Part shown: piece by piece, positions 32,831-34,340 of the stretch
Layout: each line of letters opens with the position of its first letter
How positions within the stretch are numbered: position 1 is the first letter of the stretch
Source: Octopus bimaculoides
Taxonomy: Eukaryota
Direction of reading: 5' to 3'
Length of the DNA stretch: 35,682 nucleotides
NCBI RefSeq assembly: GCF_001194135.2
Contig: NC_068990.1
Coordinates: 43,405,267-43,440,948, forward strand
Made by a program: the position numbers and the translations under genes
The notes under the pieces: model-generated
Seen by the model: only the letters and a program-made list of their open reading frames with translations
Database searches by the model: none
Told to the model about the DNA's origin: nothing

Positions 32831-34340
32831 TATACCAATCATCACAACAAAAATATGGCACCTCATTTCATTGCTATTTAAAGGAGAACTGGAAGAGGTA
32901 TTTGGACGATTGCTTTATACTTTGGAAAGACAGCATGGATAAACTCCTCAATTTCAAAATAATGCTTAACAATATTAATAGCAACATACAATTCACCATG
33001 GAGCACAGCAGTAAACAACTCACTTTTCTTGACATCCTATTTAAAATAGTCAATAACCACATCGAAACAGACATCTTGTATAAACCCACAGATTCTAAAC
33101 AATACCTATTATTCAACTCATGCCACCCCAAACACATAAAAATTAATATACCTTATCATCTAGCGAAAAGAATCTGTACCATAGTTTCGGACACCTATAC
33201 TCGTGAACAAAGACTTCTTGAACTCAGATCAATACTAATCAAAAAACATTACCCAATATCATTAATAAATGGTGGCATTAAATGAGCTAAGGATATAGAT
33301 ATACGAACATTAAGGAAAGTCAACCGAAATACTACACCAGACTTTAAAATACTCCCATACATCTAAACACATAACCCTAGAAACAACGAATCTACCCATC
33401 CTCACAGGAGATAAAACAATGAACAAAATTTTAGGCTCACACAAAATTATCAAAAGCAAAATGCAACCTAAATCATTGAAAAAAGTATTAACCAGCACAA
33501 GACTATATCCATTAACAACGGAACCAAAAGTGAAAAATGTGGTTGACCTAACTGTGGTACATGCTCTCACCTTTTGAAGGGTTTAGAGTTCCACCTTAAA
33601 CAAGGTGAAATATATAAGATTAAATCAAATTTCACCTGTGCCTCAGAAAATCTAATCTATGCCATTACATGCTTAGGGAGTGGTAATCATCATATTGGCC
33701 AAACAGGAATATCACTCTGTCGAAGAACCACTCTCCACAAAGAACAAATCTGTCACCCACAATACAGACAGATACAGGTAAGTGAACACATAGAAAGGTG
33801 TGTTAGGAACCTTAATCCTAATTTCCTAATTTTCCCCTTCTATCAATGTTCACAGAACACCTCAGTACAACAAAGAATGAATAAAGAGGCAACTTTCATC
33901 AATAAATATCTTCCACAACTCAATATGAACACATAAATTCATACAGAATACTACTAACCTTTCAATTAATACTACCCATACATCCCATACACCATTCACA
34001 TTACAGATCTATATCTACCTTAATTGCACCAAATCCAGAATTACTTACTTCCCTTACACATAATATTTTTACTCAAGGACTAGTAGAGCCGACACCATTC
34101 GGTAATTGGTGTGCATTCAAAGCAGTGATCAATAATTTTACGAAACCGGTATGCTTTTGAATCTCTTTAACAATTCACAATAATGACTTTTATTACTTTT
34201 ATTCCTACCTCAGTTCATCTAATTGTATATATCTATCGTTACTTTTCATAAAAAGCCTTTACTTTTTTTGATTTCCAATGTGAATTTTCACTTATTTTCT
34301 TCTTACTTTCCCCTTACATTTCCATGCGTAGTCTCTATTT
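32831..34340 (+). mobile_element. Penelope-like element, RT C-half + GIY-YIG + 3' UTR
   Basis: MAP, RYLDDCFILW, QFTMEH..LTFLDI, YKPTDSKQYLLFNSCHP, NFTCASENLIYAITCLGSGNHHIGQTG, KEATFINKYLPQLN*; paralogous to 13775-16108. Confidence 0.95.
34115..34162 (+). ncRNA. Minimal type I hammerhead ribozyme (G3-C8 core variant)
   Basis: Stem I ATTCAAAGCA (34115-24) / TGCTTT[T]GAAT (34152-62); core GTGATCA (34125-31); stem II ATAA-TT-TTAC; GAAA (34142-45); palindromic ACCGGT helix III; GUA cleavage triplet (34149-51). Located in a PLE 3' region. Confidence 0.75.

Follow-up and report, generated by a model that had tools for sequence, protein, structure and literature searches.

A type I hammerhead ribozyme was identified in a 35,682-nt stretch of the Octopus bimaculoides genome (RefSeq assembly GCF_001194135.2, contig NC_068990.1, positions 43,405,267 to 43,440,948 of the forward strand), and this whole stretch is referred to below as the window. 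The motif, at window positions 34115-34162 (+), is a genuine hammerhead of a Penelope-like retroelement (PLE) and is located in the 3' tail of that element. Its core reads GUGAUCA where the type I consensus is CUGAUGA, such that positions 3 and 8, which form a tertiary pair, are G-C in place of C-G. Covariation at 3-8 was found across the clade of PLEs to which the element belongs, and it is rather probable from the sequences compared that G3-C8 is one such natural covariation, inherited from an active parent family.

The complete motif is ATTCAAAGCA GTGATCA ATAATTTTAC GAAA CCGG T A TGCTTTTGAAT (in DNA letters). Its parts are given here by window position, with the basis of each assignment in brackets:

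34115-34124 (+): 5' strand of stem I, AUUCAAAGCA (sequence; covariance-model alignments)
34125-34131 (+): core positions 3-9, GUGAUCA, with G3 at 34125 and C8 at 34130 (sequence; covariance-model alignments)
34132-34141 (+): helix II and its loop, AUAAUUUUAC, 10 nt (sequence; comparison with relatives)
34142-34145 (+): core G12 A13 A14 A15.1, GAAA (sequence; covariance-model alignments)
34145-34150 (+): palindromic minimal helix III, ACCGGU, from A15.1 to U16.1 (sequence; minimum free energy (MFE) structure of the dimer)
34151 (+): A17, with the predicted cut between 34151 and 34152 at a GUA site (hammerhead numbering)
34152-34162 (+): 3' strand of stem I, UGCUUUUGAAU, with one bulged U among 34155-34158 (sequence)

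Stem I is formed by 10 Watson-Crick bp between AUUCAAAGCA and UGCUUUUGAAU plus the bulged U, and helix II, which has the same 10-nt length as in the related PLE loci L006 and L009, starts with an A.C mismatch at 10.1-11.1 followed by U-A and A-U pairs and a 4-nt loop. Helix III is self-complementary, allowing a 6-bp duplex between two copies, and a palindromic helix III of this kind is characteristic of the small hammerheads associated with PLEs. The invariant hammerhead core is present (U4 G5 A6, A9, G12 A13 A14, A15.1-U16.1 and H17), and the motif was assigned to type I by full-length alignment to the two covariance models described below (R1 and R2), with a stem I of 10 bp and a helix II that is marginal (2 bp plus A.C). 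It departs from the consensus in having G3 and C8 for C3 and G8, with complementarity kept, and A.C for the G10.1-C11.1 closing pair. An earlier note, made from the letters of the window alone, had placed a type I hammerhead at 34115-34162 with cleavage after 34151, and had described its core as departing from CUGAUGA at just two positions, 3 and 8, with complementary bases there. All of these coordinates were found to be correct, and the description of the core was accurate.

A perfect 6-bp hairpin (ACACCA / UGGUGU, 9-nt loop) is present at 34092-34112 (+) and ends 2 nt 5' of stem I; no counterpart of it was noticed in the related loci L077 or L078. An alternative register, using this hairpin as helix II and CUAGUAGAG as the core, was ruled out by inspection as no GAAA follows.

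The window was searched using a relaxed descriptor (NUGANNA with a Watson-Crick 3-8 pair, a spacer of 6-30 nt, GAAA, an even palindrome, U, H and a stem I of at least 5 bp), which matched only this site and gave 0.007 matches per dinucleotide-shuffled window (2 in 300 shuffles). Relatives, 80 PLE loci in all, were obtained from a protein-guided scan of metagenome contigs and from protein-to-contig look-ups, and two covariance models were built from them with the window excluded. R1 was made from 10 aligned hammerheads located downstream of related PLE open reading frames (ORFs), with the 3-8 contact modelled as a pair, and R2 from 38 matches in the related loci. The window motif ranked first with R1 (filters off) at 22.7 bits (E ~0.002; runner-up 14.8 bits) and with R2 at 28.4 bits (E ~3e-4; runner-up 15.1 bits).

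A chance look-alike, in which an AT-rich inverted repeat encloses UGA...GAAA with no hammerhead descent, is very improbable given these model E-values (~2e-3 and 3e-4), which come with scores 8-13 bits above the runner-up, and given that just 0.007 descriptor matches are expected per shuffled window. The strand and position of the motif also fit the PLE ORF that precedes it and the (TA)n tract that follows, and GAAACCGGU with a 10-nt helix II is the same layout as that of L006. What could favour a look-alike is that helix II is almost missing, that the fold is no stabler than shuffled sequence, and that Rfam detected no hammerhead at the gathering score or even at E<=10 when 35.7 kb, 2.7 kb or 121 nt were searched. 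However, in control searches the Rfam 15 hammerhead models also missed the PLE hammerheads with canonical cores in L006 and L023 at E<=1, and were silent at the gathering score on the related loci, where the clade-specific model finds ~45. The silence of Rfam at the window motif is therefore uninformative.

Thermodynamic support for the hammerhead fold was absent (MFE -6.1 kcal/mol, z = +1.07), G3-A6 are taken up by the 3' strand of helix II in the MFE structure of the monomer, and the two A-U pairs and A.C of helix II are marginal, all points that weigh against the reading preferred here. The MFE structure of the dimer forms the intermolecular 6-bp ACCGGU duplex.

The motif starts 178 nt past the stop codon of the PLE ORF, on the same strand, in agreement with the distance of about 180 nt given in the earlier note, and ends 200 nt 5' of the (TA)n tract. 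The element comprises the following features, where pLTR is the pseudo-long terminal repeat of PLEs:

32833-33936 (+): remnant of a decayed PLE ORF in a single frame, with the terminal TAA at 33934-33936 (translation; relatives)
33937-34361 (+): PLE 3' untranslated tail, the pLTR equivalent, up to (TA)n (sequence; analogy with the tails of L003, L077 and L078, which also end at (TA)n)
34362-34469 (no strand): 3'-terminal (TA)n microsatellite of the element, probably its insertion target (sequence; PMC8557442)

The ORF remnant corresponds to the C-terminal two-thirds of a reverse transcriptase (RT)-endonuclease protein and encodes, in order, the RT motif YLDD, a thumb/helix-turn-helix (HTH) region, a CX4CxxC linker and a GIY-YIG endonuclease (NLIYAITC...IGQTG). 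The linker reads KCG*PNCGTC (C-x4-C-xx-C), and its cysteines were invariant in both alignments made with relatives. Targeting of (TA)n has been described for PLEs with this linker type (Neptune/Nematis-type, CX2-5CxxC; PMC8557442), and both the linker and the microsatellite target are found in the window element. The best relatives of the remnant are RT + HTH + GIY-YIG proteins of ~480-610 amino acids (aa) from molluscs, octopuses and marine metagenomes, in which the Pfam domains PF00078, PF26215 and PF01541 were detected. The closest of them, P0001 (locus L001), shares 56-60% aa identity with the remnant, and no Pfam match was obtained with the decayed translation itself.

Five in-frame stops (33283 TGA, 33364 TAA, 33412 TAA, 33469 TAA and 33544 TGA) and no frameshift were found in the remnant, suggesting that it has diverged by ~11% from its intact ancestor. 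A reading of the stops as selenocysteine was ruled out, as two TGA and three TAA codons represent ordinary decay, and judged by its sequence this copy of the element is a dead relic. A run of N at 32295-32830 removes the 5' part of the PLE, the N-terminus of the RT and any upstream pLTR copy of the hammerhead.

Approximately 45 hammerheads were recovered from the related PLE loci using the descriptor and the covariance models, nearly all of them on the coding strand and 76-717 nt past the ORF (~40 related PLE ORFs). The position, strand and architecture of the window motif match those of these hammerheads, in support of its attribution to a PLE by the earlier note. The architecture is constant, with a stem I of 4-7 bp, a tiny helix II (often 8-15 nt in total), GAAA, a 4-nt palindrome, U and H. 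CCGG, which is found in the window motif, is the commonest inner helix III among the relatives, and the layout of the motif matches that of L006 (CUGAUGA GUUAAGAAAC GAAACCGGUC) and of the L005 family. Stem I and helix II covary strongly across 41 distinct hammerheads.

In L005, an identical hammerhead is present on both sides of the ORF (50-90 and 3749-3789), and L026 also has one on each side (161-202 and 4094-4135), of which the upstream copy reads GCAA in place of GAAA as its single core change. Hammerheads on both sides are expected for pLTRs. The L001 contig ends 173 nt past the stop codon, just short of the expected position of the hammerhead. When the tail of the element (33937-34361) and the entire remnant were compared with the window and the 80 loci using blastn (word size 7), no similarity to the tail was found and the ORF gave similarity of only 66-75%, and no further relatives were found in scans of viral contigs and genome contigs.

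Of the 38 related hammerheads with both letters at 10.1-11.1, 21 have G-C there and 17 do not. U.U recurs at this pair as a class, in L028, L024/L027, L020/L051, L026 and L077-L079. The A.C mismatch in the window, which the earlier note had raised as a caveat, is thus real but less anomalous than had been thought. The same change of G10.1 to A distinguishes L044 from its sister L005, and A.C in the window motif is probably the product of G-to-A decay.

The state of the 3-8 pair was compared across the 41 distinct hammerheads (window included), and was C-G in 31, U-A in six, A-U in two, G-C in one (the window) and unpaired in one. The pair is therefore formed in 97.6%, a percentage that is inflated as the seed motifs were picked by a descriptor that includes this pairing and the alignments were fitted to the model. 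The training set of the model that found the A-U and G-C matches contained C-G and U-A only. A rough neighbour-joining (NJ) tree, built from query-anchored translations of the PLE ORFs, groups the window PLE with L001, L003, L076, L078, L079, L004, L080, L077 and L002. No C-G hammerhead was found among the loci recovered in this clade, in which the states are U3-A8 (L002, L003 and L004), A3-U8 (L077 and L079) and A3.G8 (L078), and the sister clades, bivalve-like in appearance, are uniformly C-G.

The A3-U8 hammerhead of L077 (1607-1652, +) reads AAUCU AUGAAUA ... GAAACCGGUU AGAUU, has a 7-bp stem I, and follows an ORF that is open over 353 aa. That of L079 (1714-1758, +) reads UACCC AUGAUUA ... 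GAAACCGGUU GGGAA and follows an ORF with one frameshift. Both have GAAACCGGUU and U.U at 10.1-11.1, and because their stem I sequences differ, the two are, on sequence, independent cases of A3-U8. The presence of A3-U8 hammerheads in the clade, where canonical cores were not found, is the firmer result, and G3-C8 in the window, though suggestive, is one data point.

In the tail of L076 (1530-1590, +), which is closely related to the window PLE, AUGAUUA is followed 19 nt later by CAAACCGUU, with CCAUUC/GAAUGG on the flanks. This sequence, which is detected by neither model, looks like a degenerate A3-U8 hammerhead in which G12 may have mutated.

As no C-G hammerhead was found in the clade of the window PLE, the ancestor of GUGAUCA is more likely to have had an A-U or U-A core than to have been CUGAUGA. 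GUGAUCA and the AUGAUUA of L079 are two transitions apart, with a G.U wobble as the intermediate. The probability that neutral decay would produce exactly G3-C8 was calculated using a simple substitution model (5-17% divergence, two-thirds of changes being transitions, and the observed parental cores as starting points), and was 1e-4 to 5e-3. The claim of the earlier note that two random mutations are unlikely to give the exact reciprocal pair therefore stands. Its proposal that the parent family used a rare G3-C8 ribozyme is plausible given the covariation at 3-8 in the clade, but the change from CUGAUGA that it assumed is unlikely in a clade where no C-G was found. The posterior for inheritance is 0.6-0.99 if at least 1% of the families in the lineage are G-C, and is a toss-up or worse at 0.1%.

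Alternatively, G3-C8 may have arisen after the copy died, from a parent with A3-U8 (alternatively U3-A8 or a variant mismatched at G3), through two neutral substitutions that by chance made 3-8 complementary again, in which case no active family used G3-C8. This is the less probable origin, though a serious candidate, as the copy is clearly decayed, with five in-frame stops and ~11% divergence, has a probable G10.1-to-A change like the one that separates L044 from L005, and is just two transitions away from the L079 core. Single core changes are also common in other relics (CUGAAUA in L025, CUGGGGA in L060, GCAA in L026 and CCGC in L056), G-C is seen in none of the other 40 hammerheads, and a post-mortem origin becomes as likely or likelier where no more than 0.1% of families are G-C. 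Against it, the two specific substitutions have a low joint probability (1e-4 to 5e-3) and U4, G5, A6, A9, GAAA, U16.1, the CCGG palindrome and all 10 pairs of stem I are intact. The clade also demonstrably explores other Watson-Crick states at 3-8, and it is because of this that inheritance from an active parent is preferred here.

Several observations weigh against inheritance of the G-C pair from an active parent. G3-C8 is known from one copy, a decayed pseudogene with an estimated divergence of ~11% and the only copy of its family recovered, and G-C occurs in 0 of the 40 other related hammerheads. L078, the sister of L079, has a hammerhead (1745-1790, +) with the core AUGAAGA and an A3.G8 mismatch that is either tolerated as such or intermediate between C-G and A-U. 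Its ORF runs the full length of the contig without a stop (aa 106-608 of P0013), and a mismatch in such an apparently young copy weakens the claim that G-C was selected for. G at position 3 is also seen outside the window, in L075, where both arms of an inverted PLE pair (8507-8553, -, and 11349-11395, +) carry GUGAUAA with G3.A8. The L075 hammerheads have A-U at 10.1-11.1 and weak scores of 15-19 bits, and the ORF has 7 stops. The constraint on 3-8 in the clade may thus be simply relaxed.

One further sequence resembling G3-C8 (GUGAACA ... GAAA AUAU UU) was found in the Octopus vulgaris locus L003 (13496-13548, +), in a ~230-nt unit flanked by (TA)n. It was not counted as evidence and is probably not significant, scoring 15.3 bits with R1, not being recovered by R2 at E<=2, and pairing at 4 of 6 positions of stem I.

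C3-G8 forms a Watson-Crick pair in the active hammerhead, and covarying 3-8 variants cleave in vitro (PMC3884650, PMC3088659). PLE hammerheads have a palindromic helix III, act as dimers and are thought to process PLE transcripts (PMC4209133, PMC6765202). By analogy with these, the monomer of the window motif would lack a stable helix III, and the active fold would be reached only when two copies pair through ACCGGU, either within a tandem transcript or in trans between two RNAs. Each active site would then cut after A17 (34151 in the window), and this may help in the processing of PLE transcripts. The 3-8 tertiary pair in this lineage appears to be labile yet complementary, with C-G in the sister clades and U-A and A-U in the clade of the window, and G-C could have been reached from A3-U8 by two transitions through the G.U wobble and passed on by an active parent. 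The need for a dimer, the catalytic activity and the use of G3-C8 by an active parent are all presumed in this scheme, and a point against it is that PLE hammerheads cleave poorly in vitro even as dimers (PMC4209133). The window copy itself is almost certainly inactive, to judge from its sequence, because the ORF is dead, helix II contains A.C and no partner hammerhead was found in the window.

The motif resembles the type I small hammerheads of PLEs (PMC4209133; Lunse et al. 2017 as cited in PMC6765202) in its location on the sense strand of a PLE terminal repeat or 3' tail, in its type I topology with a short palindromic helix III implying dimer-dependent cleavage, and in belonging to a group with high sequence diversity and covarying stems. 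The 2014 PLE consensus (Cervera & de la Pena, PMC4209133) has a helix II of 6-8 bp and a helix I of 4-5 bp, includes an extra nucleotide 5' of 10.1 and conserves the G10.1-C11.1 pair. In contrast, the window motif and many of its relatives have a helix II of 2-3 bp with no extra nucleotide and a variable 10.1-11.1 pair, and the window motif further differs in its 10-bp stem I and G-C at 3-8. Type I hammerheads of newt and of Schistosoma satellite or SINE-like (short interspersed element) repeats share the weak helix III, the palindromic loop and activity expected only in multimers (PMC4209133, PMC6765202). However, these repeats have a canonical core and tertiary loop-loop contacts that join helices I and II, whereas no such contacts are evident in the window motif.

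Natural hammerheads with U3-A8 are known (Perreault et al. 2011, PMC3088659; the Schistosoma PLE Cercyon, PMC4209133), and share with the window motif a compensatory change at 3-8 in an otherwise unchanged core. U3-A8 is also common in the clade of the window PLE (L002, L003 and L004). U3-A8 keeps a pyrimidine at 3 and a purine at 8 and can be reached from C-G via a G.U wobble, whereas G3-C8 and the A3-U8 of L077 and L079 invert the pair to purine-3/pyrimidine-8 (R3-Y8). Some hammerhead scaffolds prefer Y3-R8. The same G3-C8 double change has been engineered in 3-8 exchange mutants, and in vitro activity has been reported for covarying variants of this kind (Przybilski & Hammann 2007; Nelson & Uhlenbeck 2008, as cited in PMC3884650 and PMC3088659). 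These are laboratory constructs on tertiary-stabilised type III or type I scaffolds, whereas the window motif is natural. In a full-text search of the literature, G3-C8 was found only as an engineered variant, and no report was found of a natural purine-3/pyrimidine-8 hammerhead, A3-U8 included.

The C3-G8 pair was the key feature in reconciling the structure of the hammerhead with its biochemistry. Hammerheads in PLE tails were known previously, and natural covariation at 3-8 had been reported only as U3-A8, so that G3-C8 would be a further natural variant of this pair and not the first. The chances are about even that this PLE clade of mollusc/cephalopod type carries natural R3-Y8 hammerheads in both forms, A3-U8 in at least two independent elements (L077 and L079) and G3-C8 in the family of the window element. 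If so, these would be the first natural R3-Y8 hammerheads, and all four Watson-Crick states of 3-8 would occur naturally in a single lineage of elements, with mismatches (A.G, G.A) and wobbles as the intermediates that connect them. Inversion of the pair would then be tolerated by evolution and not just in the test tube, and the clade would supply natural scaffolds for mechanistic tests, including a natural series in which the identity of base 8 could be tested against its 2'-OH in general-acid catalysis. Descriptor searches fixed on CUGANGA would systematically under-count PLE hammerheads. For annotation, the Rfam hammerhead models altogether miss this class of PLE hammerheads, which a clade-specific covariance model recovers cleanly. 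The immediate importance is moderate, because G3-C8 is represented by one dead copy and PLE hammerheads are weak catalysts of uncertain function.

Elsewhere in the window, no other significant match to R1 or R2 was obtained, the 5' side of the element being lost in the gap at 32295-32830. A canonical-core motif on the minus strand (34461-34518) was matched by the descriptor, and was taken as a chance match as it is supported by neither covariance model, lacks a palindromic helix III and has its stem I within the TA repeat. It is situated at the minus-strand end of a ~370-nt unit (34470-34838) that is flanked by a (TA)n tract on either side, terminates in (ATG)n/(CAT)n and looks like a candidate SINE-type repeat. 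A possible, heavily decayed hammerhead at 29707-29790 (-), ~40 nt before a (TA)n tract, reads CUGAUGA (29786-29780), a GUAAAG/CUUUAC helix with a 38-nt loop and then GAAACCAAUU GGUAAG, and scored only 15.1 bits with R2 (E 0.35), from its 3' part alone.

A second PLE copy is present at 13779-15388 (-). It is ~46% identical to the first at the aa level and clusters with the Octopus vulgaris locus L003. This copy stops at about aa 405 of 479, ahead of the endonuclease, and no hammerhead was found downstream. The window contains six N runs that represent assembly gaps (5407-6359, 10145-10154, 21805-21814, 22545-23105, 26919-26928 and 32295-32830). An ORF fragment that abuts the last of these, at 31843-32290 (-), reads KWKDKRDLLTISNMH...PNIVRDYNNGMSAID and resembles, by eye, what we take to be a piggyBac-type DDE transposase.

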